Shown piece by piece: positions 2,194-64,000 of a DNA stretch of 64,000 bases (position 1 is the first letter of the stretch; each line of letters starts with the position of its first letter). A program made the position numbers and the translations under genes. The stretch covers positions 124,001 to 188,000 of IMG/VR virus record IMGVR_UViG_3300046653_000093; one strand, written 5' to 3'. Under the pieces are notes generated by a model, which was given only the letters and a program-made list of their open reading frames with translations, searched no databases and was not told the origin of the DNA.

Positions 2194-5193
2194 TTATGTT
2201 ACGCCAGAAGCGAACAAACCAGCAACTTGATTTGATGGAATCACCAATGGTGTATTATTCCATCCGGCTTTCTTGAGATATACCGTGATCATGATCTTGG
2301 TTCTCAATTCGTTATACAAGGCACTATTTGATATATCATTCATCGTAAGCGTCATCAAGCCAGTAGCCTGGTCCATATTTACGCCAATGATATTATCTAC
2401 AATAATACCGTAGCCATCCTGATCCATTCCATCCTGATTTGGGAATATTGATTGAATCGACACACCAAATCTCACTTGATTTTTAACAAATGCATCAAGT
2501 TTTACAGTAGTACAATCAGAAAACCTAGCCGCCGGATATCCAGCTGAAGTAAAACCATCTCCATCGTCTACAACAAGTTTCTGGAACACGTTGATTATAG
2601 CGTGATTGAACATTACCTCTTGCGGAAGTTCCAAGACAATAAAATGAATGTCAACGTCTTGCTTGAAATAGTTGCCATCCTTATCGATGATTTGCCCTTT
2701 GCCAATAATAAGATTATCCGGAACGAAGAAATCATTTCTTCCAGGATCGCATGCGCCTCCGAATTCAAATGGATCTATGCAAACAACAGGAGTTGTATTT
2801 GAGCACTGACCAGTTATTTGATCTACCAAGCTAGCAGTTGAGCTGGGAAATGTAAATGTCGCAGGAACAAGCCTGGCATTACTACTAACTTGAAGCATGT
2901 AGTCTTTCCAGAACAATATTGGGTTTACAACAAATGGTAGTGGGATAAATGGCACTGCAAGGAAAGCAGGATCATCAGCTGAAATATCCGGTATGCTATT
3001 ATAACCGTAGTATTGTAGCTCAATACTAGACAAATTAGATATATCTACTACATTTAGACTATCACCATTGATTCTAATATACCCATCGCAATTGTTGTAT
3101 CCATCATAACGACAGCAATCATAATAACCATCATAACGACCGGTTGGGTTTTGAACCTCTATTTCAAGGTGCGTAAAGCTAGAGCCTGCTGGGAATGAGT
3201 GATAGCCGTCCTTAGAAACATATGCTGAAATCCTATCAACATCTGCATGCGTAATATAGCCATCTCCATCAACATCAGCTCGAATGATCTCTAGAGTATC
3301 AAAAACCCCAGCATTAATTAGAGCCTGCGTTGATTCTAAAGATAACGATTGCCCAAGGAGAGCTGTGGCACGATCTATATCGCTTGAGTCAATAACTCCA
3401 TCGCCATTAACATCTCCATACCCATCTGTGCACAATCGTACGTTAGAAATGGTGTAACCAATACCTGCGCAATTATTATTTGGAATTAGTTTGCTACCAA
3501 TAAGCTGCTGCGAAATCAAATCAGGATTTGGATTTATTACAATAAACTTATTGCCCTTAGCTAATCCAGGGAAGATTTGAGTACCAGAAATTATGTTGTT
3601 CACTTTGGCATTGACATCTCGCGCACAGCCAATGATCAAAGGATCATTAGATTCACTCAATGTAGCCAAGTTGGCATTGGTAACGAAACTAAAACTTGGT
3701 TCGAACTGCTGGCGTGAAAAAACTGGATTGCCAGTACGCTCATCTTGTTGCTGTTGAGATTGTGATTCAATAGCTTCTACTACAGCAGTGTTTAGAGTGT
3801 TTTGCCCGGTATCTGCAAATGGGTTTTGGCCAAATGAATAATCTACAACCGCACCCAGTTCATTGACTATGGTCTTTGTAATCTGGACACCATTACCAGC
3901 ATCATAGGCCATACCATCAGCAACCTTGGCGGCATCTGACCATACTTGATACCAAATATCTTCTTCTGTAACATCTGTCCATTCACTGGTGAATATGGAA
4001 AGACGATCATCTGTACTCTGACTGTTTCCTATTCCCGTAAACAAAGTACCAACGCTACTGTCTCCGGCACGTCCAATTGAAATGGCATAATATTTACCTG
4101 GTACAATAACAGGATTTGATGCGTTACCAAGAATTGAATTGTTGTATATCAGGTCAATTGGTTGAAGAACATCAGTAAGAATGTAACCTAGATTCTGCAA
4201 GCTTTGCTTGTTGATGCTAAACTGAGTTATCGGAATAGGATTTGGATCAAATTCAATTGCCAACCCAGGCACCAATTCATTTGGAGAAGTAATGGTGCTT
4301 TGAAGCTCGTATACACTAACTACAAGCTCTCCACTCCAATCGAAATAATTGGCTATAACCGAACCATTCTTACGAACGCCAAGTAGAACGGTAATCTTCT
4401 GGATATTATTGCATTTGGCCAAAAACTTTTCAGCTACACGCGTTGTAACATCTCCAGTAGCAAATTCAAAATCTCGCTTCACAGTTGTATTGATTTGAAG
4501 AGCATCAACATTATATTGAGGCCCAATACCTGCCTGAATCGTTTGAGCTAAGGTAACCGCTGGGTTTGGAGATGAGTTTTTGAAATCTCTGAAAAATAAG
4601 TTCGGTTGCACATCTTGTGCAATCATAATAGGATCGCGAGACAACTCAAGTGCCGTTGTTTCTCGGATAACTACACGTCCCCCTAGAGCACGAGAACAAT
4701 TGTCATTACCAAGAAAGTCATTAAAGAATACCGAAAGTATTCGGGTGTAGTGTTTCTTGGTAACTTGCTTCTCTTTCTTGTAAAAGTAAAAACTATCGTA
4801 TTGTATGTTTTCCTGGAAATCCAAACCAATAATCAATACCTTGGTACTGAGACGGCCTCCAACATTCGAAAACCCATTAGCATCAGAATCAGATAGTTCT
4901 ACTTCAAGTTGATTTCCCAACTTACTATCACTCGGTTGCGCTAATGGCCTCAGACCAGTACCATCTAAATCGTGAGATGCTATCAGTGCCTCTTGATCAG
5001 AGAACATATTATCAGTATCAAAAACTACATTTTGAGCCGATGCAGATGGAAGTACGCCCGAGCCAAAGTGATTTTGTATAATCGAAGCATCAATCTTGAC
5101 ATTCCGATCTTGCTCTGTAGTCATATCGGTCTGATCGACTTGCTGACCGTCGTACCAAAGAACTTGAATTTGTGATACTGGATTTTGGTTCAT
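2194..5193 (-). CDS. Tail/baseplate-associated virion protein with a dockerin-like (paired EF-hand) domain
   Basis: Directly downstream of the wedge genes; GDVNGDGVIDSSD...ADVDGDGYITHAD duplicated Ca-binding loops; 7 DGY motifs. Confidence 0.6.
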   Translation of the reverse strand: MNQNPVSQIQVLWYDGQQVDQTDMTTEQDRNVKIDASIIQNHFGSGVLPSASAQNVVFDTDNMFSDQEALIASHDLDGTGLRPLAQPSDSKLGNQLEVELSDSDANGFSNVGGRLSTKVLIIGLDFQENIQYDSFYFYKKEKQVTKKHYTRILSVFFNDFLGNDNCSRALGGRVVIRETTALELSRDPIMIAQDVQPNLFFRDFKNSSPNPAVTLAQTIQAGIGPQYNVDALQINTTVKRDFEFATGDVTTRVAEKFLAKCNNIQKITVLLGVRKNGSVIANYFDWSGELVVSVYELQSTITSPNELVPGLAIEFDPNPIPITQFSINKQSLQNLGYILTDVLQPIDLIYNNSILGNASNPVIVPGKYYAISIGRAGDSSVGTLFTGIGNSQSTDDRLSIFTSEWTDVTEEDIWYQVWSDAAKVADGMAYDAGNGVQITKTIVNELGAVVDYSFGQNPFADTGQNTLNTAVVEAIESQSQQQQDERTGNPVFSRQQFEPSFSFVTNANLATLSESNDPLIIGCARDVNAKVNNIISGTQIFPGLAKGNKFIVINPNPDLISQQLIGSKLIPNNNCAGIGYTISNVRLCTDGYGDVNGDGVIDSSDIDRATALLGQSLSLESTQALINAGVFDTLEIIRADVDGDGYITHADVDRISAYVSKDGYHSFPAGSSFTHLEIEVQNPTGRYDGYYDCCRYDGYNNCDGYIRINGDSLNVVDISNLSSIELQYYGYNSIPDISADDPAFLAVPFIPLPFVVNPILFWKDYMLQVSSNARLVPATFTFPSSTASLVDQITGQCSNTTPVVCIDPFEFGGACDPGRNDFFVPDNLIIGKGQIIDKDGNYFKQDVDIHFIVLELPQEVMFNHAIINVFQKLVVDDGDGFTSAGYPAARFSDCTTVKLDAFVKNQVRFGVSIQSIFPNQDGMDQDGYGIIVDNIIGVNMDQATGLMTLTMNDISNSALYNELRTKIMITVYLKKAGWNNTPLVIPSNQVAGLFASGVT

Positions 5194-5195
5194 AT

Positions 5196-8100
5196 TTACT
5201 TCACATATTTAATACCAACCGTAGAAACGGCCGGCTTGAGGGCATTGATCAAGGCCTCCAACACGGTTTGGATACGAAGATCTCCTGTAACTATGTTAAA
5301 AGAATCAATGATATTGATGTCAAAATTGAAAATGCCGAAAGTTGGATCGTAAATTACCGCGAAATCATCTGTTTTTTGTACAGATTTATCGAAGTCAAGC
5401 AAGAAAGTTGTGAAAGCATCCGTAATAGATGGGTAGATGAAGTCCGTATTACTGTTGAAGTAAACGTCTCGCGGCTGTCCTGCTATTACAATAGGATCAA
5501 TTGCTTTGTTCGAAATCTTCAAGTTATCAAATCTCGCCTGAGCTCCAAAGTTTCCTGCGAAATCTTGTCCAACCGAGAACTGCTGTACAGTATCAGTAAA
5601 GTTTATATCAGATCTGAAGATTTGGCTTCCCACTCCACCGACAGCCGCCTGGCCCCAGATGACACCTTGCCCGAACAACATATTGCCTTGTCCGAATAGT
5701 TGCGCCCCTCGTTCCTCTCCATCTACGAATAGACGAATCTCATCGTTATTGTCTTTACGATTGAACTTGAATGACGCACGAATTCTATGCCATGTATCGC
5801 GAGGCCAGAACACAGGCTGTCGAACTTGATATTCTTTGCTATTGGCATTTATGGTGAAGCAAATAAAGCCCTGTGGATCTTTGGAGATTGTCAACCTATC
5901 TCCACGAACACCAGTTGGAATATATGCAACTTTTACCGGAGTGTTCTGATATGGCAATGGAGTATTCAAGATGAGAGTTCTTCCATCACTGGCAATACTT
6001 CCACCATTGAAATATTCAGTTCCCTGCAAAGTTGTATCGTTAACCAAGCGCACATACAATACGCTACTGGCTCGTCTAGATAGTTTAACACGACCCTTCG
6101 TGATGCTTACGTCTTCTTCGATGATATTAGCAGCGGCATCGAAGTATATTCTAACTCCAGGATCATTATAGGTATCATATCTTGGGCTTATCCAGAACTC
6201 AATCAAACCTTCGCTGGCTGTGTTAAGCAAACCGCCATTATCAAATATAAGGCCTCTATCTTTGATTACTATACTGTGACCAAATTTTGAATTGACACTG
6301 CTGCCAGATTGAACGTATTCCTTACTTGCAAAGGTATAGAAATCGCTATCATTAATTAGCGGTAGAGATTCACAATGGAACAAAGCTAGCGTATCTATAT
6401 TCTTAACAAACGGAGATATCTTGGTTGCTCCGGTTGTGATAGATTCCTCATTGTTACCAATCGTTTCGCCAATACGAGTATCCGTAAGTTGTCTGTTCAG
6501 AATTCTAATCTCATCAAGAATACCCTTTACTGGATTTTGTAATGTGATATCATTTCCAATTATTCCAGTTTCCTTTGTCAAAGGATCAAATGGTACGGAT
6601 AGATAAGAGGCAAAGTCAATATCATACCATCCTGGCGGCAACATAAAGGCAGAATCGGTGAAGCCTGCTATCTCCAAAAATATGAATCCGTTTTGGAATC
6701 CACTACGCCCAATGCTGATATTGTACGCAGCATAAGATCCATTGGTGAAGTACCCATCAACACTATGATCTAGTTGAATCGTATAGTTATCTATTTTGTC
6801 TATTATCTTGTAGATACCAGCCGAAGATGGCGGCGAGGTAATTTTGAGCAAGTTACCAACAATAGATGCTGGGAAGTAGCCTTGTAGATCCCTAACTATG
6901 GTATAGCCACCATAGCCATCAGATTCCAAAGAGCCACCAGACTGAGTTTGGTATGCGAACCTAATAACCGGATACAGGTTGTTTCCGTTAGGCTGTGTAA
7001 TTGTGTATGCCTCTTTTATTTCAACGGCTATACTATCGTCGTAGCCATCAATTGGAGCCACATCTACAATAATCGAATCAACTTCTTGCCATTTATTTAC
7101 TGTAAGTTTCTTACCAGGATATGTAAATGTAAGTGTTTCGCTTGTTACGGATCCCAAGGCAGCATATCCATCTAGCTTCACAGTTACTGGAACTGAGAAA
7201 TTAACATTATCTCCAGTAATACGCACTTCCAATATGCGGCCTTCTGTAAGTAAAGCATTTGAATTTTGCAAGAATGTACTTGGTTGTGTGATATCGGCAT
7301 TCTCTCCTGGTCCTGTTCCGAAAATTAAATTATCCCCATAACCGTCAACTAGGAAATTTCCAAAATCATCAATTAAGTAGATAAAACTAGTACCTCCAAA
7401 AGTTGCCTCAAAAATATATCCATCTATCACGGCTGAATTTTCTGGACCGATTGAAGTCAATGGCAATACAACAGTCTTAATAGACACATCATCCAGATTG
7501 ATTGGAGGAGGAAGCCCAGTTTTAAGTAGAGAATTATTACTCCACAGGAATACCCTATCCTTAGATCGCCTATGGTTCAAACCAAACGTTTTGATAAGCA
7601 CAGTATCGCCGGCTAGGGTGTTATCAAAAATTGTCAGAATCCTCTGGTTAAGAGTGTTCCTATCAATTGAGTAAGAAGGGACTCCAGCTCTTGTTCCTGG
7701 AATTTCACGTTCATTTCCATATCCGTCTACAATAAATACACCTATGTTCTTGTAGATATCAATCTCAGTTCCGACAATAAACTGTGGCGGATTAATGATA
7801 AATCTAGCATCATTCAAAGAAGCTGACATATTGGCACTCAAGGTCATCTGAGTCCCCGATGCATTGGATATTACATACTTACCAAACCCTTGTTCCATGA
7901 TGTCAATAGTGTACCCATCATCAAGCGCAGATAGACTTAAGGATGGAGATATTACAATATTAGATCCTTGGGTTGTTATAAGGTCATTGCCAGTTATTGA
8001 ATTTGCAAATACAACCCCAACGATCTGTTCTGGAACCACTGTTCTAAATCTATTATAAGATGCAACATCTGGAATATTACCATAGCGCGCAAGGTTTGGA

Positions 8101-11100
8101 GTTTCAAAACCGTCAACATACAGGTGCATTTCATCTCTACGATCTGAGGAGTTTAGACTCCAAGAGATACCAATAGTATGCTTTTGTCCAGAGCCCCAAT
8201 TTTGTATATCGGCGCTTACTTGGTATACATTTTTTCGGTCTGGTTGTACCAATCCAAAGCCACCACGATCCCATACTTCGAAGACCAAATACCCTCGGCC
8301 GTCCTTGTATAAAGAGAATCGATTCTGAGTTTCATTCTTACCAAAATCGAAGAAATAATGTCGATCGTCTGACATTAATTGAATGCCATCAAACGAAACA
8401 CCTGGGATATATCCATCGCCATATTCATACCCATCAGGGCTGAGAACATCATAGCCATCCAGATGGAATTCAAATTCTACTGTCGAAAGCCCAGACCGTA
8501 AAATGTCAGTATCCTCTGCAAGCCCAGGAACAAAATTCACATCATAGAATGAACCAGATGTGGTAACCGTACCCGAATATACATATCCGTCAGGAACATC
8601 CTTGGCAAGAATCTTCCAATGTTTGATATCAGTGTCATAATAAATGAATATGCCATTTCTGATAAAGATCAAAGCTGGAAGGCCCTCTGGGCTATTCTCA
8701 TCTGTTCTATTGACAGAGAATGTCCCATTCGCAATGGTTGGGTTATAACATCTAGATCCAATATAAATGTTTTCTGCTGGAACTACATAGCCATCTTTGA
8801 ATAGCTCAAAGGTCAAGGTGGCATCATTGTCGATACCATCCCAATCAGTAATAACTGACAACTCAAGAGTTCCTTCTTCCAGTCTCAAGTTGTTGGAAAT
8901 TGGAAGGGTTGCTCCATCTCCAGCTTTCAAAACTGCCAAACCCTGATCGAAGAATCCGGCAGATAAATATGGCGTTCCAAAAACGGAAGATGGTACCTTT
9001 GACAAGAAACTAACGCCTAAAGACCAAAATGCTGCCTCTACAATTTTAGGATCAATTTGGGTTACGCTGGAAATCAGTTCCTTCATTGCCGGTATTGTTG
9101 GACCTTGCGTAAATGTCTGCAAAGCTCCCTGAAGGATATCGCGGTAGATTTCACGATCCAATTCCTCATCAAATACTTGAAGCTCTGGAATTTGAACTAA
9201 AGTTCCGAAGTTCTGAAGCAAGGAGTTGCGCAAAGCTCCAATAGAATACGTTGTGTAATAAGTATCTCCTTCTTTGAATGTATTACTGGTACGATGATCA
9301 ATAACATTATCGCCCCATTCATACGAGACTAAAAGTTCATCTGTTACACTTGAATAATCAACAAAAAAATCTCCACGGTTGTAATCTACAATTGGAGTTG
9401 CCTCTCCATTCATTATAACGGTGTATTGGACATTAACAACATCACCAGAAACTGCAAATGCGTTACTTAGATAAATGACGTTACCAAGAGAATATGTATA
9501 TCCATCGACAAGCTGATATCCATCACTTACTCTGATAACACTTGTGACTTCTCCTACTTCAATGCCCGCTGATATAAATGGTACAGTAATTGTTAGAGTA
9601 CCACTTACCACCTCTTGTGATGTTTGAGCAATTCCTCCAAGGGTAATTACATTGGCCGAGATGGTTGCCGAATCTGCAAAGTTTATTGGGCTTACATGAT
9701 TGTTTAGATCGTACGCGTCATACAGACTACGAAGCGTATCGATATCATCAGTTACCGTAATCGTGTTCTCAAAAACGAAATAAGGATTCGTTGGGTCTTT
9801 GTTTGTGAAGCGCTCATCCGAAACGTCCATGAGGCTTGGTGTTGGGGTTATGGCCGCTTCTCCAAATGAAATGTAATCCAAAATCTTCGAAGGCCCAAAG
9901 TTTGGATTTATACTGTTGTAGACTTGAGAAACTGAGACAACATGAGGATTTACAGGAGAGATAACAGGAATCTTGTAAGAGACCGTTCCAATGCTAAGGC
10001 TTTGATTATTCGTAACTCCTACATATATAATACCATCGCGATAATTTATTTGATACTGACCAATAGATAGCCTGTTGGTATTAATTATCTCTGATAATTC
10101 TTGAGAATCATAATATACCTCAGTAACAAAAACATCATTCTGACTAAAACCAACGCTAGTATTAAAGCTAGACCCAATCACATCATCGGTGTTACCCATG
10201 ATATTTTGGTTCATGACTCTTATTTTTAGCACGCGAACGCTAAAGGCATTGACAAGCTCATTCTCAAGAATCAATGACTCATTCAAAACAGAAGCAAAAG
10301 ACGCCCTCTCTAGAGTGATATTGGTAATTTTTGGTGGAGTTCTTGAATCAAAGAATATCTTGTTATCAGTGATTCTTCTGAGCGTATATATTTCTCCAGT
10401 TGTTTCGTTGTAGATTCTAAAAACATCTGTAATTGGTGCGTTTATAGTATATAGCGAATCCAATGTTGCAAGGCGATTTTGAACTCGCTCATTCAAACTC
10501 TCAACATGTACATTGGCTACATAGTCAATACCAGGGACATAGGTTTGCTCAAAAAGATAGTTGATCTTTGCTGTTTGTGTCACCAATTCTCGAAGAGGGG
10601 ATGCGACAAGATCTCTAAACTCAGGAACATAGGTATAGTCTAAACGAGAAATATATGTTTTTCGGTAGTAGTAATTCATGGCCGGAGGGAAATCTCCAGT
10701 TCCATCATTTTTAATCGCTCCGTAAACGAAAACACGACCGGTTGTATAATCAACCGAATATTCTCCAGGATAATTTGGCAGACCGCCTTCACGATACGGA
10801 ATTTCATTCGAGAAAGCTGGATGAGTATCAATGAACGGAGTCGCTGAATAAGGATCTAAGAACTGAACACCGCCAGATGTTGGTATTTTATCTCCGGCCG
10901 TAACTACCGGAGCATTTTGCAGCGAAAACATCGTGGTAATTGCAGGAGCAACTTCTCTGATAACCTGATTTACCTGAACAACAGAAACGCTAGTATCATC
11001 GATGATACGACCCAACGATTTGTATTCGTAAGAAACTACAATCTTATCATTACCGCTAGGGAGCACAAAGGTTGGATCGTCTTTTAGAGTGTCATTAAGT

Positions 11101-11993
11101 TTGATTTGGTTATTGGCAAGTGTAATCAAACGACGACCGAATGCAGTATCATATTTAGGATCACTGATTTGGTATCCTAGCGTTCTAATATCGTAGGCAA
11201 AGGTATAGCCATCTGAATATTTTATTGTAACTGAAGTTAATTTGGTAACTGGAAGCTTATTCAGCGTCAACGTCAAATCATTATATGTTCCCTTTCCAAT
11301 ACCAAGTACTAAAATCTCATTGGTAACAACATCCCGTTGTAGAGTTATTGGGTCTGATGGGAAACTATCGAAAGCAATTACCCCTTGTATTGTTTCGTCT
11401 GTTGGGGTTAGTCCAACACGCCAAACTTGAAAAGCTCCCTCTTGATTAAGGCGATCCCAAGGACCAAAATTACGAGTTTTCAACTCATCTTTTACGAGAA
11501 TTTCAAGATAATTAGCTGACTTTGCCTGGCCAACATCAGCTTGGGCTTTATTCAATAAATTTGAAGTCTGATTTAATATAGTGCGTACGAATGTTTCACG
11601 AGATAGATTGTAAACACTTTGAGGACCACCCAATAATGTTACTAGGTTATCGCGAGTTGGGTTGTAATCATTCTCGGCTCCTAAGACTCTGGCAACGTTG
11701 GCACGCCCATCTTCAAGCAAGAACTGACGATTGTCTAAGCTTCTGAACTTTACAGCATTTGTAGATTGAAAAACTACCTTGTATCTAGCATATGGAGTTT
11801 GAGGTAATGTGCTAATAATGAAGATATCATCAGCGACCTCAACTGTAAGAACTTCAACATCTGGAACATTTACAACCTCAGACAACACCAATACATTTGA
11901 TTGCCCAATATCAACTGCTAGCGCGGCTGAAAACCTTACCTTAATCGTTCTGCTATCGGCCGCATTTATGTCCAATATTCTAAGATTTGCCAT
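5196..11993 (-). CDS. Very large baseplate wedge protein (P2 gpI/T4 gp7-like core) with LamG/concanavalin-like domains
   Basis: Follows gpJ-like gene. Wedge-like segment LLQNFGTLV...YRDILQGALQTFTQGPTIPAMKELI and C-terminal ALKPAVS; LamG-like strands (EGTLEL, HTIGISW...LYVDG, GILDEIRI, WHRIRASF...LFVDG, FDNLKIS); 16 DGY. Confidence 0.7.
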   Translation of the reverse strand: MANLRILDINAADSRTIKVRFSAALAVDIGQSNVLVLSEVVNVPDVEVLTVEVADDIFIISTLPQTPYARYKVVFQSTNAVKFRSLDNRQFLLEDGRANVARVLGAENDYNPTRDNLVTLLGGPQSVYNLSRETFVRTILNQTSNLLNKAQADVGQAKSANYLEILVKDELKTRNFGPWDRLNQEGAFQVWRVGLTPTDETIQGVIAFDSFPSDPITLQRDVVTNEILVLGIGKGTYNDLTLTLNKLPVTKLTSVTIKYSDGYTFAYDIRTLGYQISDPKYDTAFGRRLITLANNQIKLNDTLKDDPTFVLPSGNDKIVVSYEYKSLGRIIDDTSVSVVQVNQVIREVAPAITTMFSLQNAPVVTAGDKIPTSGGVQFLDPYSATPFIDTHPAFSNEIPYREGGLPNYPGEYSVDYTTGRVFVYGAIKNDGTGDFPPAMNYYYRKTYISRLDYTYVPEFRDLVASPLRELVTQTAKINYLFEQTYVPGIDYVANVHVESLNERVQNRLATLDSLYTINAPITDVFRIYNETTGEIYTLRRITDNKIFFDSRTPPKITNITLERASFASVLNESLILENELVNAFSVRVLKIRVMNQNIMGNTDDVIGSSFNTSVGFSQNDVFVTEVYYDSQELSEIINTNRLSIGQYQINYRDGIIYVGVTNNQSLSIGTVSYKIPVISPVNPHVVSVSQVYNSINPNFGPSKILDYISFGEAAITPTPSLMDVSDERFTNKDPTNPYFVFENTITVTDDIDTLRSLYDAYDLNNHVSPINFADSATISANVITLGGIAQTSQEVVSGTLTITVPFISAGIEVGEVTSVIRVSDGYQLVDGYTYSLGNVIYLSNAFAVSGDVVNVQYTVIMNGEATPIVDYNRGDFFVDYSSVTDELLVSYEWGDNVIDHRTSNTFKEGDTYYTTYSIGALRNSLLQNFGTLVQIPELQVFDEELDREIYRDILQGALQTFTQGPTIPAMKELISSVTQIDPKIVEAAFWSLGVSFLSKVPSSVFGTPYLSAGFFDQGLAVLKAGDGATLPISNNLRLEEGTLELSVITDWDGIDNDATLTFELFKDGYVVPAENIYIGSRCYNPTIANGTFSVNRTDENSPEGLPALIFIRNGIFIYYDTDIKHWKILAKDVPDGYVYSGTVTTSGSFYDVNFVPGLAEDTDILRSGLSTVEFEFHLDGYDVLSPDGYEYGDGYIPGVSFDGIQLMSDDRHYFFDFGKNETQNRFSLYKDGRGYLVFEVWDRGGFGLVQPDRKNVYQVSADIQNWGSGQKHTIGISWSLNSSDRRDEMHLYVDGFETPNLARYGNIPDVASYNRFRTVVPEQIVGVVFANSITGNDLITTQGSNIVISPSLSLSALDDGYTIDIMEQGFGKYVISNASGTQMTLSANMSASLNDARFIINPPQFIVGTEIDIYKNIGVFIVDGYGNEREIPGTRAGVPSYSIDRNTLNQRILTIFDNTLAGDTVLIKTFGLNHRRSKDRVFLWSNNSLLKTGLPPPINLDDVSIKTVVLPLTSIGPENSAVIDGYIFEATFGGTSFIYLIDDFGNFLVDGYGDNLIFGTGPGENADITQPSTFLQNSNALLTEGRILEVRITGDNVNFSVPVTVKLDGYAALGSVTSETLTFTYPGKKLTVNKWQEVDSIIVDVAPIDGYDDSIAVEIKEAYTITQPNGNNLYPVIRFAYQTQSGGSLESDGYGGYTIVRDLQGYFPASIVGNLLKITSPPSSAGIYKIIDKIDNYTIQLDHSVDGYFTNGSYAAYNISIGRSGFQNGFIFLEIAGFTDSAFMLPPGWYDIDFASYLSVPFDPLTKETGIIGNDITLQNPVKGILDEIRILNRQLTDTRIGETIGNNEESITTGATKISPFVKNIDTLALFHCESLPLINDSDFYTFASKEYVQSGSSVNSKFGHSIVIKDRGLIFDNGGLLNTASEGLIEFWISPRYDTYNDPGVRIYFDAAANIIEEDVSITKGRVKLSRRASSVLYVRLVNDTTLQGTEYFNGGSIASDGRTLILNTPLPYQNTPVKVAYIPTGVRGDRLTISKDPQGFICFTINANSKEYQVRQPVFWPRDTWHRIRASFKFNRKDNNDEIRLFVDGEERGAQLFGQGNMLFGQGVIWGQAAVGGVGSQIFRSDINFTDTVQQFSVGQDFAGNFGAQARFDNLKISNKAIDPIVIAGQPRDVYFNSNTDFIYPSITDAFTTFLLDFDKSVQKTDDFAVIYDPTFGIFNFDINIIDSFNIVTGDLRIQTVLEALINALKPAVSTVGIKYVK

Positions 11994-12004: not shown

Positions 12005-15000
12005 TTATCTAGTATCAAGTTTAGCTAAAACATTGTTCGCTTGTATGTATTGATTACTCTGTGCCGTAATACTTAGTACCTGGCCAGCAGCTCCATCCTT
12101 GTTGAATTCTAAGATTCGAACACGGTCAACTCCATTTACTGTATAAGCCACATTAATAAAATCTGAAGAATCTATGGTCGTAGCCAATGCAGTTGAGTTC
12201 AATGAATTAGTGACTGCATCCTCTACATTTTGAAGAACAACAGCACTAGAAGTATCAAAACCAGGAGAAACGACAATTGCCAAAGTGATATTAACTAAGA
12301 TTGGTACGGCGGCCTTGACTAAAACATCAGCTCCGATAGGTCTTGTTCTTTCGATGTTGAATGTATTGTCCGTAATTACTTGATTTGCATTATAGTGTAT
12401 AGTGATTCTTTCATTTGGCTTAGGAGCTAAATAATCATAATATGCAGTATACCTTGTGCCCTGTACCGGCTGATTCTGAGGCGCAATAGAAAGCGTTGCT
12501 GACTGCGAAGTGGTGGAAGTAAATCCGCTGGAAATTGACACAACATCAACAAATGCAAATCTCTTTTGAGTATACAGAGTCCCACTCTTGCTGAATGATA
12601 CGTTTTCTATATCGCTGGTCTTGCTAATATAGAATGTAACTCTGATCTTATCACCAATCTTTGGCAAATTAGCATTGTTACCAACGGTGTTAGGAATTGC
12701 TATTTGCGTAGGAGTTAGGCTTGAGTTGCTAGTAGCCTCAAATTTAGAAAAACTATTATCACGAATCGAATATCCAAATACATCATAGACATGATCTATA
12801 GAAATCACTTCCGTACCAGATAGTTCCACCTTTTCAAAACCTACCAAACTTATTATTGTAAGATTGGATGGAATTGACTGATTGCTGTTCAAACCCAAAG
12901 CTGTTCGTATCAGGGATGAAAAATCTTGAACCAAACCATTCGCGGTGGCAGTTAATATTTTATCAAAAACTCCCTGGATTGTTGTGCCGGAAACAGTGAT
13001 TACGCCTGGAGAAATAGTTCCAGCAATTGTTAGCTTCAACCTAGTTGGAGCCTTTCTAAGATTGAATTCAATTGGAAGAGCTGTGTTTGGTATCGGCGAA
13101 GGATTTGGAAAGTATATATGAGTTGTCGGTTGAGTTCCAAATATATTACCTGTTCCAAAATAAAACCCATTGTCATTTCTAAAAATTGGCAATGTAGACA
13201 ATGCTGTCGAAGGAACAAGTTGATTGATGTTAGCCAAATAATTGACCTCAACAATCGTCCCGGCAACAACATTGGTTGATGATGGAAGGGTGATTACATT
13301 ATCACTAAAGCTTCCAGAAATACCATTGCTTATGAATTGATCAATGGCATTATACCTTATATTTACTAAATCTCCAATCTGCGCAGTTGTGTCCGTTGGT
13401 AAATAAACAGTAAATCCGCTAAAACTTCCATCTTTGGTACCGGTGTTGAAAACCTCGTCATTATTAGAAGACTCAACTACCGAGACAACATTTGATACCA
13501 AGCCGGTCACAACAACAGCCAACCTATTGCTGATAAGCTGTACAAAGCCATACCCATCAGTAAACACATTAATAGATACAACTGCATTTACCGGATGAGT
13601 AACTGTAACTGTTTTTGTGTTAACTCCAGTTACCACAGACTCTTCTCTGCGCACAACGTTTGAATATCCCCAATCAATACTATCTACAACGTCACGGATG
13701 TTATCAGAGGATACTTTATTATCAAAATCCCAATTTAGATCATAATTGAAAATCCAAACGTAGTCTACTTGAAGAATATCACTTACAGCTGGAAGGGTAG
13801 AACCTGAAATTGTAATGCGGCCGGTGGTGTTTTGGCTCCCTCCGTCTGGATTTTGATTTGTAACTATGTAGCGCTCTCCAGTTGTCTGGTTGAAAACTCT
13901 GGTAACCGCAGTGATTGGGGAGTGAGATAATTGAATGGATGACCGATCTGCCGGACTTACATTGCTATTTTCGTTAACTATTTGAATGTTTTGATTAACT
14001 GCACTAATCAAAGTAACATCAGAAAAATTGGTAGAGTCCTGGCTATTGAATTTACCCTTAGTAATATCCTCTGCTAAATCTCTAATCCTATCATCGACCC
14101 AATGCAAACGATCAAATCCCCATGGGCTTCCAGCGTACACACCGGTGTCTCGCAGCAATTCATAGTTTCCAGATACAACTCTAGATGCATCTACACTCTT
14201 TAGAGCGAAGTTAGAACCGCTAGAAGATCCGGTAATGCTAATGATATTGGTAACTGGCTGATTTGGCAGTTGTTGATTATTGATATCATCAATTCTCTTT
14301 CTAGAGACCGTCTTGTTGGCATCTGTGGTAATTTGCCCAAGAACAAAGTCATTCGAAGGATCAGTTGGATCATCTTTGTTGCTATGATCAAAGTATATGA
14401 ATCCGTCTATAATTTCAACCAAACGGAAGCCATAAGCGTAAAGGTCTACTTTCCCACCAGTCCCTTCAGACACAATCGTCTTGGTGCCATCTGCCGCCGT
14501 GAATACCTGTGTTCCATCGCGAGTCATTAAAGGATCGCCGGGGCCAACCACTAAACAGTCTATGACATCCGAATCTGCTATAATTGTATTCTTATAGCCA
14601 AGAGCAGTTCCGGTATTTGATCCGCTGAAAATACCAAGAATTCTACGTTTGAAAGACGAATCAGTCTCGGCTGAAGCTCCACCTTGAAAGGAAGCTGCAT
14701 TTGTGACATTTGAAACTCCAGGAATCGTAGTATTATTCAGCGAATAACTGGAAATATTTCCATTACTTCCAGTAGATGTGGCTGTTACCTGGGCCTCAAC
14801 GGCATACTGATCTGTGATTGCTGCGAAAGCTAAAGCTGCAGAATACTTCGAGGCAGTGGCTCGATAGGTGTTCTTATTGTTCACAGCTACCGTAAAGGAA
14901 TTGATGACTGTAAACGAAGCTCCATTACTTGCCGTTACCACTCCGCCGGCATTAATTGGAATATCAGCCTCAATTGAATTGAAGGTAAGGATTGCAGTAC

Positions 15001-29715: not shown

Positions 29716-30060
29716 TAACTAACCACCTTGCGCTTCTTGCGTTTTTTCTTCCCAACTTTATTGGACTCAAGAATTTGTTCACGAACCTTCTTGCTGGTTT
29801 CATCCAAATTCGTGGCCTGCACATTTGGATTCTCCTGACGGATCATTCCTTGAGCCATTTCAAGATTGGAGAAAGATCCAATAAGAATAGCCTGGTTTCT
29901 TAGCTTCTGAGCCTCTAGCTCTTGATCATGAAGCCAACTTTCATATAACCATACCTTTAAATATGCGTTAATATCCTCATAGAAAGGATCATCTGGCAAC
30001 TTATGAAACAATTTCATTAGATATCTAATGAATTGATGCTCAGGTGTCCTGACCACTTTT
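29715..30060 (-). CDS. Tail assembly chaperone, downstream (T) portion, probably reached by frameshift
   Basis: Overlaps the 3' end of 30040..30699 in the +1 frame; no obvious RBS; classic G/GT position between tube and tape measure. Confidence 0.6.
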
Positions 30061-53750: not shown

Positions 53751-53751
53751 A

Positions 53752-57056: not shown

Positions 57057-57067
57057 TTGATACTCCT

Positions 57068-57622
57068 TTAAGAAACAACTTCCACATGTGCGTGCCAGTC
57101 AATAGTACCAGATAAGCCTGTAACTATGATAACTATATTGGGCCCACTTACCGAATCGGAAACAGATAAATTTGGATCTTCTATATAATCAGGACTTGGC
57201 ACTAAATCTTGCAATATTGCAGGAGATCCTGCTCCAATACGTTTGGCAGTAAACTCCCTAACAAACTTACCAATAACAACGCCAGAGCTGCGTATTGCAA
57301 TAATAGTTGCCCGAACCGATATAGATCCACCAATAGAAATCGTATGACTATAGAGTGTTGTTGGTACTGAATTGGTTGTTGTAATAGATACAAAATCTTC
57401 ATCTGGTGATGATAAAAATTGAGTATCATCACCCCATTGAACGCTATCTTGACCGTCTATGACATGGAGACCATCAGCTGTTCCAAAAGTACCAGAAGGA
57501 GCCGCTGTGTATCTACCATATCCGTCAATCCAAGCTATAAAACCTGCTTGAACAGCCGTTTGCAAAGCTAATAAATCAAGATTAGCCAAATGAAAGCTTT
57601 GCTTAATATATAGTTCTGTCAT
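57068..57622 (-). CDS. Small virion protein, paralog of the 542-aa C-terminal domain
   Basis: TTTNSVP...VTGLSGTIDWHA versus TTTNATP...VTGVVGTTIAWRA; start likely MTELYIK. Confidence 0.55.
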   Translation of the reverse strand: MTELYIKQSFHLANLDLLALQTAVQAGFIAWIDGYGRYTAAPSGTFGTADGLHVIDGQDSVQWGDDTQFLSSPDEDFVSITTTNSVPTTLYSHTISIGGSISVRATIIAIRSSGVVIGKFVREFTAKRIGAGSPAILQDLVPSPDYIEDPNLSVSDSVSGPNIVIIVTGLSGTIDWHAHVEVVS

Positions 57623-57660
57623 ATCTACAACATGCATAAATATTAGGTATACAATTATAA

Positions 57661-59019
<1,359 letters not shown>

Positions 59020-59388
59020 TTACGTTCCTATATGCCAAATATGAACGTCTACAGTACCAATACCAGCAAAATATATCTCATTCTCTCCTCTTGGTCCAAA
59101 GTCAAGAGTTTGCCCAGAGCTAATACGCCCATGGATATTGTAACCAGAGAAAGAATATATTACGTCTGTTCCGCTAACACCAACCAACATTATTCTACGA
59201 GCCCCGCGAAAAGCTGTACGAACTTGAGGTGTTATTGGGAAAAGCGGATAGTAACCGTCATAGCCATCATAAGGTGTTCCTATCGGCGCAACATATCCAT
59301 CACCCCATGTACCACTTGTTACAGATGTGTTTGTACTTACGACCTTAAAAAAATTGTAATCCTTTCCTGTATTAACTGGCTTGCCCAT
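59020..59388 (-). CDS. Small beta-rich virion protein with a DGY-rich loop
   Basis: GAGGT RBS before MGKPVN; WGDGYVAPIGTPYDGYDGYY. Confidence 0.55.
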   Translation of the reverse strand: MGKPVNTGKDYNFFKVVSTNTSVTSGTWGDGYVAPIGTPYDGYDGYYPLFPITPQVRTAFRGARRIMLVGVSGTDVIYSFSGYNIHGRISSGQTLDFGPRGENEIYFAGIGTVDVHIWHIGT

Positions 59389-59470
59389 TATAACCTCAAA
59401 TACATACAAAAATATACCATTGAGCCTTCTAAAACTTAAATATCAAGCTAGAACATCCATATCTATTATA

Positions 59471-60253
59471 TCATGGCAAGCTCTGCCAAATTATATAGAC
59501 AGTTACAGCTCCAGTTGTCGGAGAATTAGTTTCTGTTACATTTGCGAATATCGCCTGAGATGCTGGGTATATCGCTTCAAATCCAGTTGACTGAGACATA
59601 TCACTGCCTAATGATGTTAGCGCAAATCCGCCAACAATAGATCCTACCGCTACAGATGGTATTATTGTTTGAGAAACAACTATTTGCTGCCCACCAGAAG
59701 TGGAGCCTATACTAATCGCTGAGCTAGGACTACCGCCACCAGTAATTGCTGTCTTCACTCTCAAATCAATTGATATCAATTTCCATCGACCGGAACCAGA
59801 TGGACTAGAAGTCCTAGTATCAATAAGAGTATTGGCAGTAGTTGTAAGATCAATATCAAAAGAAACAGCTATATATGGAGATGGAGCCGCTTGACCAAGA
59901 CGAGTATCTATTCTTGCAATATGTTCGCCAATATATCCGTCTATCGGAGGTGCATAGTTAACTGGTAAATATGATAGCTCTATAAAGTATCCATCAACAG
60001 GATCACTTCCACCAGCCTCATGGGTGCTTGCGTGTGTTGCTGGTGTTCTTGAATTTACATAACCTATCGTCGCATAACCATCGATAGCTAAAAGAATTTC
60101 ATTATCCACAGCCTCTACCATTTCCAGGGCGGCTGAATACCCATCCAATACAGCTCCTAGGCCATCAAGTTTAACCTTATCTGCGGCTGACATTTCTCCA
60201 TTAGCTAATTGAGAAGAAAGAAGACTTGGATCTTTGTAATTTATTGTACCCAT
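59471..60253 (-). CDS. Fiber/decoration-like virion protein
   Basis: GAGGGG RBS before MGTINY; GEMSAADKVKLDG repeat; HASTH..GGSDP module shared with the collagen protein. Confidence 0.6.
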   Translation of the reverse strand: MGTINYKDPSLLSSQLANGEMSAADKVKLDGLGAVLDGYSAALEMVEAVDNEILLAIDGYATIGYVNSRTPATHASTHEAGGSDPVDGYFIELSYLPVNYAPPIDGYIGEHIARIDTRLGQAAPSPYIAVSFDIDLTTTANTLIDTRTSSPSGSGRWKLISIDLRVKTAITGGGSPSSAISIGSTSGGQQIVVSQTIIPSVAVGSIVGGFALTSLGSDMSQSTGFEAIYPASQAIFANVTETNSPTTGAVTVYIIWQSLP

Positions 60254-60324
60254 AAAACCCCTCGCACATGCTGGCGTAGCCGCTGGTTTATCAACAACAT
60301 ACAAAAATATCCGTTGCGCTTCAT

Positions 60325-62492
60325 TTATTGAGCATAGATGCTGTATACATCATTATTTCCTGATTCAGCCACAAGCGATACAGCATTGAGTCCAGTAAGT
60401 GATAGGTTTGAAATTACGAAGGAAGCTCCATTGCCTGTATATGACAAGGTGTTATCAGCTGTAGCCATCCAGATTGTGGCTACATTTGTGGCCATATCTG
60501 GTGCAAGCATGACACAATCTACAGAACCATCAGCATTAACCGTTGCATAGCCTGAAGCCCCACCAACAACTGTACCTAAGGCACCGGTGATCAGGTTGAA
60601 GTTGGCAAATCCAGAGCCTCCACCTACTGCTAAAGCCACCCAATTTCTACCGGTTGGCTTGATACGCACTCGGAAGACAACTGGTCCTCTCACATAACCT
60701 GGTATTGTACCAACCACAGTAGATATATCATGACCGCCAGTGCTATTATCCTCTACCAGTGTTGTGTTGTTCCAAGAAGCGACTCCTGCATCAATAAGGA
60801 ATGAAAGAGTGCCTGTCACAGCCATTGTGCTTGCTACAAGCGAATAGCTTGGTATTCCATGAGCCGAGCCACCAGGAGCCGTTCTCGCCAAAGATACAGA
60901 GCTATTAGGGGTAGTCCAAGGCGCTGGAAAGAATACTGGCGTTGTTCCGTTTAGCGTGACCGAACCACTATTAGTGTAGCGGAACTGTGTTCCCGCCGGA
61001 TTTGGTGGCGTTACTAAATTAACTTTACCGTATGTAACAATATTTCCTGAACCTATAGAGTTAATATTTTCAGGCACAGCTAACTGTCCTCTAACGTTTC
61101 TGATGTCTAAACTGTGGCCCGACACTCCAGTAGTAACCAAGGTAGTTGAACTATCCACAATTAATGCATCGACAATATTATCTTTGCTGATACAAGCATC
61201 ACCATAGATGATACCTGCTGAGATTCCGGACACAAGCAACTTCCCAAAGTGGTTTCTGTTGCACCCAAGAGTTCCATTTGCACCCAAGACTACGAGCGCT
61301 GTAACTAGACCTGGAGTTTGTGCACTCGCATTCAAGTCTGAGATATCATTATCACAGAAATCAGAGCCAGTCCAAAACACGCCTGCAGTACCAATTACAT
61401 TGACAGCCTTGAGTCCGCGAATCGTATTTCGATGGCACCCACACTCATCTGCTGGGATATCAATATTGATCGAAGTTGCGATAAATGGTCCACAGCAGTT
61501 CTCACCAGTGGCCCCATCAATAGTTGAATCCCAAGTAGTATTTAACCATACCGTGTATCCAATATTCTCACTCTTGACATTGCGAACAACAGCACCACGT
61601 TGCCCTTCGATAGCAAACCCAGAACGATTCGAATCAGTGCCATCCAACCCTATCGTAATAACATTATCAACCAAGTTATCTCTACCACTAATATCAAAGC
61701 CAACTAGTGAGGTACTGGATGTTCCTGCTGTTTGCTGGATAATTCCAGGACCAATTACTGAGCATCTCCAAACAGAGATCAACTCAATGAATCGATTGTC
61801 CGCATAGGAACCATCAAAAGCACATAAAATTTTGGCATTATTCAACTTTACATTGAAATTGATTACTGGTGAATATTTATAAATGTTACTTGCAGGTATG
61901 GAGAACAATACAGGGGCATCCAAATTGACAGTTGTGCCAACAACCGATATTGCCTGAAACGAGACCCGTGCACCTTTGTTCGTACTGATCCAAAAATAAT
62001 CTCCAGCTACCAATGGTGTACCAGACCATGTAACTGTGAGACTATTAACTCTAGCCGCAGTAGCTCCAATAGATCCTATTGTGGCGGGAGTTCCTGGGTT
62101 GGCTACAATCGGGCAAGTTCCAAGACCAAAAGTAGTAGTTGTAATTATCGTATTTCCATTAAGATCTAGCGTAATATTAGAACGATATTTCCATTAAGAT
62201 CTAGCGTAATATTAGAACGAGCAGCGATAATGGTGTGATTACAAATATAAGGAAGTGTAGATTTTCTCAACTTTACGGTAGATCCATAAGGTGCCGCTTG
62301 TACAATTGTATTGATTGCAGACCAGTCATCTGTTGTCGAACCATCAATTGGAGGCCCAGCCCAAACGATTACGGAATCATTTCTAGAAACATAACCATCT
62401 GATATGTTATTAAGCTTGATGCTATCTTCCGCTTGAAAGAAACCAAAAGATTCTTCCTTCACATGTCCCGGGAATTTCTGGAATTTAGACAA
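60325..62492 (-). pseudogene. Beta-helix tailspike/fiber gene split by a 35-bp duplication (ORFs 62166..62492 and 60325..62013)
   Basis: DGSTTDDWSAIN...STVKL...Y...I...SNITLDLNG is a pectate-lyase-3-like N-terminus. Removing one repeat copy fuses the two ORFs into a 710-aa frame (...LDLNGNTIITTTTFGLG...GTPLVAGDY...). Confidence 0.8.
62151..62220. repeat. Exact 35-bp tandem duplication causing a frameshift
   Basis: tatttccattaagatctagcgtaatattagaacga x2. Confidence 0.95.
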
Positions 62493-62551: not shown

Positions 62552-62559
62552 CGTTGCAT

Positions 62560-62589
62560 AAACAAAAAGCCCCGGTTTGCACCGAGGCT
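62560..62589 (-). terminator. Rho-independent terminator after the major capsid gene
   Basis: - strand AGCCUCGGU-GCAA-ACCGGGGCU followed by UUUUGUUU. Confidence 0.85.
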
Positions 62590-62621
62590 CTCTGTATTCA
62601 TTTTGAACTAACTAGCTAGCA

Positions 62622-63623
62622 TTATCCGACGATTGTTGACTTGCGAGAAGCAGCAACGGCGCGTGGGTTCACGATACCGATACCAATCTCTTCCGACACA
62701 ACCCATCCTAGTTTTAACTGTTTTGGTTCATCAGCTGGGATAACTTCGATGTCCTGACGGATTGGAAGCACACCAACGAACTCTGGGTCAGAGGCACCGT
62801 AGACTGTTCCTGGTGGAACGATCTTCGAAACCATAATGTCAGCGCCCCAGATGTGAGCATACAGACCTGTCTGAAGAATCTCACGCTGCGTAACTGGATC
62901 AATTTCACCAGCCGAGGTTCCGGAAGATGCCCAGTTAAGGATGTCCGTAAACTCATTGATGTTCATGAAGTACTTCGTTGTTACAAGGTCCCAACGATCA
63001 ATCTGAACCTTGATCTCAACCAAGTCTCTCTTCAACAGACCGCTGTCTGTGATGTCCTGCAACGTGTTTTCAACACTCGATGCTGCGTCGATAGCCGCAA
63101 AGATGTTTGCATCTTCTTGAGCCATCAATTCTTGACGGGCCTTTTGAACGGCACGGTCAATAACGTTGAATCGACGACGACGAACCTCAGAGATACGAAC
63201 TGTTGGGTTCGAATAAAGCTCGAACGTTGGCACAACGATACGATCACCGAACACACGAGACTCACCACCGGTACCATTGCTGGAAATGACGGTAGCTGCT
63301 ACGTCAATATCACGCTCATACTTCGGGTCAACGCCTTGTGGAAGAGGATCAACCACCAACAGACGACGGGCAATTCCCTGATAATCCAAGTTACGACGAA
63401 TTGGGTTCGCCATAGCCTGAGCAAGAGCAAGCTTTCCTTCCTGTGTCATAATCGCACGAGCAATAAGCTCATCGCGCTTTTCGTCATTCAAACCTGGTTG
63501 GCCCGAAAGAGCCATATTTGAAGGCTGGCCCTCTTCGAGGATCGCAGCGTACTTAACTAGCGTATTCAATGCATCCTTTACGGATGTGGCATTCATACCA
63601 CCACGGGTATCAAATAAAGACAT
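62622..63623 (-). CDS. Major capsid protein (HK97-like fold)
   Basis: PIRRNLDYQGIARRLLVVDPLPQG, ELMAQEDANIF, GWVVSEEIGIGIVNPRAV; AGGAG RBS before MSLFDT (63623); strong downstream terminator. Confidence 0.88.
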   Translation of the reverse strand: MSLFDTRGGMNATSVKDALNTLVKYAAILEEGQPSNMALSGQPGLNDEKRDELIARAIMTQEGKLALAQAMANPIRRNLDYQGIARRLLVVDPLPQGVDPKYERDIDVAATVISSNGTGGESRVFGDRIVVPTFELYSNPTVRISEVRRRRFNVIDRAVQKARQELMAQEDANIFAAIDAASSVENTLQDITDSGLLKRDLVEIKVQIDRWDLVTTKYFMNINEFTDILNWASSGTSAGEIDPVTQREILQTGLYAHIWGADIMVSKIVPPGTVYGASDPEFVGVLPIRQDIEVIPADEPKQLKLGWVVSEEIGIGIVNPRAVAASRKSTIVG

Positions 63624-63681
63624 ATATAATCTCCTAATGTTTGTTTGTAAGCTGCCAAAATCCATCAACAGCTAGCGGAAG

Positions 63682-63703
63682 AGGAGGGGAATTCCACCCC
63701 TCC
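63682..63703 (-). promoter_or_regulatory. GC-rich hairpin in the leader of the capsid gene
   Basis: GGAGGGG-tggaatt-CCCCTCC inverted repeat without a U-tract. Confidence 0.4.
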
Positions 63704-63722
63704 AAATCCATATATCGATCAA

Positions 63723-64000
63723 TTATGTAAGCGGAGGCGAGAAGTAGAACAGAGCACGGAATGCTCCACCACTTGGGTTCAGGATTGTTCCTGATGGGCT
63801 CAAGGCAGCCGTTACCAATGTGACCGGGGTTGTTACCAAGCTTCCACCCTTATAAGATTCGAAGTTCAAGAACCTTCCGACAATTGCATAACCATCAGAG
63901 TCAAAGTTCACCGAAGCGTTAGGTGTCAACAGACCAGCAGCCGTTGCGTACAACGGAGCACCAATCTTGAGGCTTGAGTTAGTTGGTACCAAGCCCGTGA
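63723..64000 (-). CDS. Head decoration/cement-like protein (partial, runs off right edge)
   Basis: LKIGAPLYATAAGLLT...AIVGRF pattern; directly upstream of the capsid gene; frame open to the window end. Confidence 0.6.
   Translation of the reverse strand, partial: TGLVPTNSSLKIGAPLYATAAGLLTPNASVNFDSDGYAIVGRFLNFESYKGGSLVTTPVTLVTAALSPSGTILNPSGGAFRALFYFSPPLT

Follow-up and report, generated by a model that had tools for sequence, protein, structure and literature searches.

The tripeptide Asp-Gly-Tyr (DGY) is strongly overrepresented in the structural proteins of a clade of huge, uncultured phages, in which it is gained and lost as a unit, mostly in predicted surface loops. We describe it from a 64,000-nucleotide stretch of IMG/VR record IMGVR_UViG_3300046653_000093 (positions 124,001 to 188,000; hereafter the window), which represents the structural module of a huge phage and matches the IMG/VR contig IMGVR_UViG_3300021077_000115 (391,957 bp). 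Based on sequence comparison and predicted structure, we propose, with a probability of roughly 40%, that DGY serves as a three-residue sequon on the virion surface, recognized by a phage enzyme that most plausibly glycosylates the tyrosine.

The 40 open reading frames (ORFs) analyzed in the window, comprising 20,536 amino acids, contain 71 DGY against 3.85 expected from composition. Within-protein shuffling (2,000 rounds) returned a mean of 3.85, a standard deviation of 1.9, and a maximum of 13. Ranked by z-score, DGY is the top tripeptide relative to independent residue frequencies (z = 34) and again relative to a first-order Markov model, which predicts 12.9 occurrences (z = 16). The excess of DG and GY dipeptides is wholly attributable to DGY, with 71 of the 175 DG in the window continuing with Y. 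Among the related tripeptides used as controls, DGF is mildly raised (12 versus 5.2 expected); EGY (1 versus 2.3), NGY (3 versus 3.7), and SGY (4 versus 5.0) are not, and neither are the permutations GDY (5) and DYG (1), each with an expectation of 3.85, nor DAY and DSY. A first-pass annotation of this DNA had counted by hand about 70 DGY in 16 proteins, with three to four expected. Exact per-ORF counts agree, adding one overlooked site near the C-terminus of a 219-residue ORF (30040..30699), and composition and shuffling arrive at the same expectation. The test that the annotation had proposed, against shuffled sequences and DGF, EGY, and NGY controls, thus leaves DGY strongly raised and the controls not comparably so.

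All substantial ORFs in the window lie on the minus strand, and those with DGY are concentrated among genes for the tail and particle exterior, as far as these can be assigned. A 2,265-residue wedge-like protein with beta-sandwich domains (5196..11993) holds 16 sites, and a recount upheld the earlier observation that Y follows 16 of its 26 DG dipeptides. The adjoining gene encodes a 999-residue outer baseplate or fiber protein (2194..5193; seven DGY) with a Pfam Dockerin_1 match at residues 592–659; a Cys-rich stretch containing three of the DGY comes after this type I dockerin, which has paired calcium-binding loops. A baseplate J-like protein of 1,085 residues (12005..15262; Pfam Baseplate_J, E = 4e-21) has one site, and a 708-residue baseplate-region protein (17398..19524) has three. 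The tail sheath (821 residues, 31403..33868), identified by a Foldseek probability of 1.0 to the phi812, T4, and P1 sheaths, carries four. Further along are proteins of 269 residues (34595..35404; one DGY), 1,691 residues (a virion protein, 35438..40513; three), and 697 residues (43191..45284; seven), the last designated a neck protein in the first-pass annotation. A fiber-like protein of 1,167 residues (47588..51091; Pfam SASA, E = 3e-7, and Laminin_G_3) has seven DGY and is followed by a 301-residue protein (51103..52008), in which an N-terminal array of nine sites precedes His-rich runs. The remaining carriers are a 213-residue protein (57068..57709; one DGY), a collagen-repeat fiber protein of 449 residues (57661..59010; two; Pfam Collagen, E = 1.7e-11), a 129-residue protein (59020..59409; three, including one tandem pair), a 277-residue fiber-like protein (59471..60304; four, one of them in a segment with a paralog in the collagen-like protein), and a 108-residue protein (62166..62492; one, within a paralog of the N-terminal segment of the 1,167-residue fiber). 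Just upstream of the capsid gene, the window includes the C-terminal 89 residues of a 232-residue protein (63723..63992), with one of the two DGY of the full protein; its position in the gene order is that of the phage G decoration protein gp26.

Several proteins of the window have no DGY at all, and the absences listed in the first-pass annotation were borne out for the following. These are the tail tube (216 residues, 30738..31388; phmmer matches to phage G gp179/gp180), the putative tape measure (1,708 residues, 21545..26671; assigned from size and position only), the major capsid protein (348 residues, 62622..63668; PDB 6wkk, E = 1e-93; PHROG major head protein, E = 2e-76), a family 2 glycosyltransferase (GT2; 226 residues, 130..810; Pfam Glycos_transf_2, E = 1.4e-12; NCBIfam rhamnosyltransferase-like), a GT1/GT4-type glycosyltransferase (373 residues, 823..1944; Pfam Glycos_transf_1 / Glyco_transf_4), a NifS/IscS-type cysteine desulfurase (53752-54840), and a LAGLIDADG homing-endonuclease-like gene (42364-43176).

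The excess resides in the protein rather than the DNA. Codons within DGY mirror overall codon usage, the window using 13 different 9-mers and the clade as a whole all 16 possible ones, and the degenerate pattern GAYGGNTAY occurs 73 times on the minus strand, 71 of them in frame, and never on the plus strand. Because the codons vary and the DNA pattern is almost only in frame, selection acts on the protein, as the first-pass annotation had argued, and we rejected a DNA-level repeat. Paralogous duplication was also rejected as the source of the excess. A comparison of flanks resolved the 71 sites into 64 unrelated contexts; therefore, paralogous segments account for only about seven sites, and a few modules are shared (sheath insert with the 697-residue protein; N-termini of the 1,167- and 108-residue proteins). 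In the former case, sheath residues 170–215 are homologous to residues 255–300 of the 697-residue protein, with two DGY at equal spacing, and by this homology the segment is a small domain exchanged between the two. The 301- and 697-residue proteins both have DGYDGY followed by His runs (six and three in a row, respectively) and a common Leu-Trp segment, which together may constitute a metal-binding module. Beyond the three residues themselves, an extended-motif search over 1,277 unique flank contexts found weak preferences only: Gly follows DGY in 18%, and Lys, Arg, and Pro are depleted immediately after it.

The trait extends well beyond the window. Searches of IMG/VR with the sheath, the wedge, a profile of the 999-residue protein, and the capsid protein yielded 76, 15, 79, and 80 loci, respectively, mostly from contigs of 100–480 kb, and DGY enrichment is common to well over 100 contigs of related, uncultured phages of 200–480 kb. 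Structural ORFs are enriched 8- to 25-fold in nearly all loci. Over all fetched loci, DGY occurs 1,381 times versus 141 expected (9.8-fold), and the controls stand at 0.8-fold (NGY), 0.5-fold (EGY), 1.6-fold (DGF), 0.4-fold (DGW), and ~0.9-fold (DAY and DSY). A DNA scan for three consecutive DGY codon triplets returned 45 loci, ~20 with an in-frame triple motif, against a chance expectation of ~0.05 loci by our own estimate, which assumes ~1e11 bases in the collection. For about a dozen of these in-frame cases, the contig belongs to this group or the locus encodes homologs of the wedge, 999-residue, baseplate J, or sheath proteins, some with only 28–35% identity. Other triple-DGY proteins (loci L350, L359, and L368, with 1,554-residue proteins; L354 at 394-1659; and L369) have no BLAST homolog among the window proteins in the fetched stretch; the L369 locus, on a 301-kb contig, has 12 DGY versus 0.9 expected. 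These five may come from elsewhere in related phages or have arisen independently.

A single DGY-poor lineage emerged from the re-ranked scan (L094/L123/L176/L383; IMGVR_UViG_3300025867_000038 and Ga0116170_10000062). Its 2,203-residue wedge homolog has no DGY, and its 984-residue homolog of the 999-residue protein has two. Since its closest relative (51% identical) is enriched, this looks like secondary loss. Both contigs, one of them 96 kb, stop ~300 bp past the 984-residue gene, short of where a glycan-synthesis cluster would be expected (see below).

For a view by protein family, every ORF of the fetched loci was assigned to its best homolog in the window. Enrichment is highest in the family of the 232-residue, decoration-position protein (81 DGY versus 2.7 expected, 30-fold, 61 homologs) and that of the 999-residue protein (408 versus 16.8, 24-fold, 75 homologs). 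The 708-residue (30 versus 1.3, 23-fold), 697-residue (18 versus 0.9, 20-fold), and 219-residue (14 versus 0.7, 19-fold) families follow, then the sheath (151 versus 9.8, 15-fold), the 1,691-residue protein (178 versus 11.9, 15-fold), the 269-residue protein (40 versus 3.1, 13-fold), and the wedge (446 versus 39.7, 11-fold). Baseplate J homologs are weakly enriched (26 versus 7.5, 3.5-fold). At the other end are the tube (0 versus 2.0, 62 homologs), the capsid protein (0 versus 2.5, 60 homologs), the tape measure (1 versus 2.2), the 318-residue (0 versus 2.1) and 690-residue (0 versus 1.7) families, and the glycosyltransferases (GT1/GT4, 0 versus 3.7; GT2, 2 versus 1.6). Summed, the inner virion proteins have 1 DGY versus ~9.6 expected, a total on which we do not rely given that homologs are non-independent. 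Non-virion proteins encoded downstream of the tail module (79 loci, 165,638 residues) are at baseline, with 23 DGY versus 25.6 expected (observed/expected, 0.90). Where function is known, the division thus runs between outward-facing proteins and inner or non-virion ones, with sheath set against tube and decoration protein against capsid. For the remaining tagged families, we infer an outward orientation from size, gene order, or partial domain hits. The confinement to outer virion proteins posited in the first-pass annotation is supported by this split insofar as the families can be placed.

An outgroup is provided by Bacillus phage G. The capsid protein of the window is 53% identical to phage G gp27 (PDB 6wkk; L374 23289-24137), making phage G (Donellivirus gee) the nearest cultured relative of the clade, which consists of 200–480 kb metagenomic phages related to this largest of cultured phages. 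The two share the capsid, sheath, tube, baseplate J, sheath initiator, and a few other proteins, but differ in the features at issue here. The whole phage G genome encodes 33 DGY versus 21.6 expected, its tail proteins are not enriched, and most of the small excess comes from a repeated domain in gp424–gp427 (L379 20002-37435), in which six copies of DGY sit within a longer conserved motif. Phage G likewise lacks the glycan cluster: phmmer found no match in it to any of the 13 cluster-region genes and no homolog of the wedge or 999-residue protein. Its two annotated alpha-glucosyltransferases lie among thymidylate-synthase-type (nucleotide-metabolism) genes. As phage G has no comparable enrichment, we rejected the idea that DGY excess is a general property of myovirus tail proteins.

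Comparison of close and distant homologs revealed how the sites turn over. The wedge protein carries 16 DGY in the window phage, between 0 and 11 in ten full-length relatives, and 0 in the most distant (35% identical). In an alignment of 69 homologs of wedge residues 1040–1770 (a 731-residue segment), 307 DGY occupy 67 columns, 57 of which are filled in 10% or fewer of the sequences; 67 is an upper bound on the number of distinct sites because alignment of insertion-bearing loops may split one homologous site across adjacent columns. Many columns consist of an inserted lone DGY or a short DGY array, and new DGY stand where relatives have NGD, NGT, PGD, SGN, or DG-. Permutations are rare in the same alignment (DYG, 18; GDY, 5; YGD, 5) and limited to three to five columns. 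At columns with recurrent DGY, sequences lacking the motif have a gap in 309 instances and otherwise match it at none (130), one (126), or two (77) of the three positions. The near-variants DGF (2), EGY (1), and NGY (0) make up 3 of these 333 non-gap alternatives. We conclude that the three residues come and go together and that a lost Tyr is not replaced by Phe. In the sheath, the sites at residues 184 and 201 are common to 27 and 30 of 42 homologs, respectively, with unrelated residues such as PGL or DSS at these places in more distant homologs, and the sites at 407 and 412 occur only in the four closest sequences, inside an insertion. In 28% of tandem DGY pairs, versus 14% by chance, both members use the same codons; therefore, slippage contributes, and the arrays outlast codon divergence. 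Tandem clustering and placement in loop insertions, both noted in the first-pass annotation, are evident from the wedge and sheath alignments, and its more general description of DGY as a short linear motif fits the clade-wide occurrence, the gain and loss as a unit, and the lack of enrichment of DGF, NGY, and EGY.

Predicted structures place most sites between strands. An AlphaFold2 model of wedge residues 1040–1770, built from the 69-sequence alignment (mean predicted local distance difference test [pLDDT] score, 81), is all-beta, with 12 of 13 DGY in inter-strand loops or hairpin turns of two to five residues and one at a strand end. Foldseek found only weak beta-sandwich neighbors for this fragment, with low template modeling scores. 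In the sheath model (mean pLDDT, 80), sites 184 and 201 lie in loops, whereas the other two belong to a long hairpin, with site 407 at the end of one strand and site 412 spanning the turn. All four sheath sites are in the inserted region, outside the conserved C-terminal core (Pfam match, residues 617–716). Taking both models together, 14 of 17 DGY are in inter-strand loops and three are at strand ends, one of these at a hairpin tip.

A candidate source of a modifying enzyme adjoins the tail genes. Directly downstream of the 999-residue gene and on the same strand is a glycan-synthesis cluster of at least 11 recognizable enzymes; the GT2 gene at 130..810 is the first visible cluster gene, and the cluster runs on past the low end of the window (region L078). 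Window and L078 together encode six GT2 enzymes, one GT1/GT4, one GT10-like enzyme, one GT11 fucosyltransferase, an FkbM-type methyltransferase, and an NAD-dependent sugar dehydratase/epimerase, along with three proteins lacking any match and one zinc-finger protein that matches no enzyme family. Eleven of the 13 cluster-region proteins have no segment resembling a membrane span. The dehydratase/epimerase (L078 14291-15220) shares 75–86% identity with bacterial enzymes of Myxococcota, Xanthomonadales, and numerous other groups. No other gene here is nearly as conserved, which suggests an acquisition that is either recent or under strong constraint; the motifs of the enzyme hint at a UDP-xylose-synthase type. 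Its homologs span many phyla and give no usable host signal. Core gene order is kept right after the 999-residue gene in nine relatives from the wedge search (L084, L086–L088, L090–L093, and L079, the last showing cluster genes on a shorter piece), and GT1/GT4 homologs of 45–81% identity occupy the equivalent position in L084–L093. Among the 79 loci retrieved with the 999-residue profile, all that have several kilobases of downstream sequence carry cluster homologs there.

We interpret DGY as a motif read by another molecule on account of its specificity for residues and their order, its all-or-none turnover, its location in loops, its restriction to virion proteins that appear exposed, and its baseline frequency elsewhere. 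A preference of structure, an effect of composition, or a feature of the DNA would be at odds with this combination. Tyrosine glycosylation ranks first among the possible outcomes because the cluster is the only visible candidate reader and because precedents exist in bacterial surface layers (S-layers) and mycobacteriophages. Here we infer that a protein reads the motif, that this reader is an enzyme of the cluster, that tyrosine is the acceptor, and that a glycan is the product. In the mechanism we envisage, the DGY tag would sit on accessible loops and hairpin turns in the sheath inserts, wedge, fiber-like proteins, 697-residue protein, and head decoration protein, and selection would keep its three residues together because something reads them. 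Virion proteins assemble in the cytoplasm, and the likeliest reader would be a soluble phage enzyme produced late in infection. It would O-glycosylate the DGY tyrosine, after which the tail-adjacent cluster would extend the glycan. The outcome would be a sugar coat on the particle exterior, its density changing through gain and loss of DGY. That the clade runs its own cytoplasmic tyrosine O-glycosylation with a DGY sequon, tuning a glycan coat over the sheath, baseplate, fibers, and decoration protein, is a proposal we advance tentatively, with the odds against it in this full form.

A number of observations weigh against tyrosine glycosylation. The link between DGY and the glycosyltransferases is guilt by association. 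Their co-occurrence across relatives, which the first-pass annotation had suggested checking, was found wherever enough sequence is available but does not discriminate: with each trait close to universal in the clade, their joint presence says little. Lineages with reduced DGY (L169/L173, 4-fold) still have cluster homologs, and the cluster could instead serve DNA glycosylation or alteration of the host surface. None of its enzymes resembles a known tyrosine-specific glycosyltransferase, and no family 8 (glycogenin-type) member was found in it. A promiscuous cytoplasmic enzyme might be expected to cause avoidance of DGY in non-virion proteins, and these show none. The hydrophobic periodicity around DGY is weak, and the outgroup comparison depends on a single genome, that of phage G.

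In the main rival reading, DGY stays unmodified and forms a loop that binds an outside ligand, such as a capsule, exopolysaccharide, other surface polymer, or metal ion, with many weak sites possibly producing multivalent adhesion, as proposed for immunoglobulin-like decoration domains of other phages. We consider this somewhat unlikely yet a serious contender, since it accounts for the same outward-facing distribution and for the predominance of predicted loops, and fast site turnover fits selection on number over position. The weak Foldseek neighbors of the DGY-rich wedge beta-sandwich chain include glycan-binding modules, lectin-like, dockerin, or carbohydrate-esterase domains accompany DGY in several of its carriers, and DGY arrays stand beside His-rich runs in the 301- and 697-residue proteins. 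Generic stickiness should, however, allow variants, and GDY, DYG, YGD, SGY, NGY, and DGW are not enriched; nor would a binding loop give the conserved, adjoining glycan cluster any role, and it has no known ligand. Tolerance of variants is also the difficulty for a purely structural turn, in which an Asp-Gly hairpin with a strand-initiating Tyr spreads by drift or small duplications. Substitution of Asn for Asp and Phe for Tyr would be expected in such a turn, whereas NGY stands at 0.8-fold, DGF at 1.6-fold, and DGW at 0.4-fold over all loci, such variants are near-absent at DGY columns, the equally beta-rich tube and the related phage G tail proteins are not enriched, and distant homologs, which fold without the motif, and phage G have no DGY at the same places. 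We therefore regard a structural turn as improbable, even though strand-loop boundaries hold most of the mapped sites, glycine turns of other sequence (NGT, PGD, SGN) are common at equivalent places in relatives, and the codon identity of tandem pairs implies that some copies arose by slippage.

A different modification would fit the motif-like behavior too. The tyrosine might be phosphorylated, sulfated, nucleotidylated, oxidized, or cross-linked, or isoaspartate or succinimide might form at Asp-Gly. No other sequence is as prone as Asp-Gly to succinimide formation, and sulfation sites and some kinase sites typically have acidic residues close to the Tyr. No kinase, sulfotransferase, tyrosinase, or Fic-type enzyme was recognized among the scanned ORFs in or next to the window, however, and spontaneous isoaspartate formation needs no tyrosine; these options collectively have a slim chance, a little below that of the structural turn. 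Least probable of all is docking, in which DGY would bind a virion component or assembly factor such as a cement protein, fiber, or chaperone. The motif does occur on many structural proteins that need decoration or joining, and the dockerin-type module of the 999-residue protein suggests modular protein–protein attachment in the virion, but rapid change in the number and position of sites between close relatives and the presence of tandem arrays are unlike stoichiometric interfaces, and no candidate partner was identified.

Tyrosine glycosylation at DGY would differ from each of the systems it most resembles. For mycobacteriophages, phage-encoded virion glycosylation is reported in which the capsid and tail tube subunits carry the glycans at their C-termini (Freeman et al. 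2023, as summarized in PMC12619734). Phage glycosyltransferases near structural genes (here the GT2, the GT1/GT4, and the downstream cluster) and a proposed exterior glycan coat are shared features. The targets are not: the capsid and tube are both DGY-free here, and the candidate tyrosines are in internal loops. The gene cluster is far larger here as well, and the glycan is only a candidate. Without DGY in its capsid and tube families, the clade falls outside the mycobacteriophage type as defined by target. Tyrosine-linked glycans are found on the S-layer proteins of Paenibacillus alvei and Thermoanaerobacter, and the part of that source available to us mentions no S-layer sequon of the DGY type (PMC2943079). 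The resemblance consists of an O-linked glycan on Tyr, proposed in our case, at multiple sites of a self-assembling surface protein. In S-layers, the glycan is assembled on a lipid carrier and then transferred en bloc by a membrane oligosaccharyltransferase outside the cytoplasm, whereas phage proteins assemble within it. As no membrane O-oligosaccharyltransferase was recognized and most cluster enzymes look soluble, we also rejected membership in the S-layer type by mechanism.

Three-residue sequons have parallels elsewhere, including N-x-S/T and the Bacteroidota O-glycosylation motif D-(S/T)-(A/I/L/V/M/T), and sites turn over quickly in surface loops, as in viral glycan shields. DGY is like these in that a tripeptide would decide surface sites and differs in its residues, the proposed Tyr acceptor, and the cytoplasmic compartment. 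Chloroviruses and mimiviruses have their own multi-enzyme glycan machinery, with a methyltransferase and fucose/pentose enzymes, and bypass the host secretory pathway; this is a functional resemblance only, as these eukaryotic viruses use other acceptor residues and unrelated proteins. Among large phages, the aquatic "moraphages" are reported to have Bacteroidota hosts and to include four putative glycosyltransferase families among their core or near-core gene groups (PMC12619734).

Other genes of the window complete the picture of the module. A sheath initiator is also recognizable. The 1,167-residue fiber-like protein combines lectin-like and SASA carbohydrate-esterase domains (residues ~549–918), which suggests a receptor-modifying (deacetylating) tail fiber. 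The LAGLIDADG homing-endonuclease-like gene lies between virion genes, and the cysteine desulfurase (Pfam Aminotran_5, E = 4e-28) and a small HNH-like ORF (53421-53879) lie amid the structural module. A Gly-rich protein of 562 residues (60325-62013) has a weak Pfam Latrotoxin_C match (E = 4e-4; 20.5 bits versus a cutoff of 25) that is probably due to chance. Scans of 20 virion proteins against PHROGs gave almost no matches, and PDB sequence searches with the 697-residue protein and with the sheath profile gave none.

Our literature search found no description of a DGY motif in phages. At a practical level, DGY enrichment offers a simple sequence mark of proteins that appear outward-facing in these poorly annotated phages. 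Should DGY instead work without modification, the virion would display a minimal loop for adhesion or recognition at very high copy number, which would also be new. If DGY is glycosylated on its tyrosine, it would be the first defined sequon for phage virion glycosylation and the first for tyrosine glycosylation in any system, amounting to a new code for protein modification, with none simpler known for tyrosine. The adjoining cluster would then supply a candidate enzyme set for attaching glycans to Tyr of folded proteins, and huge phages would have an evolvable means of shielding or functionalizing their whole outer surface, much like the glycan shields of animal viruses.

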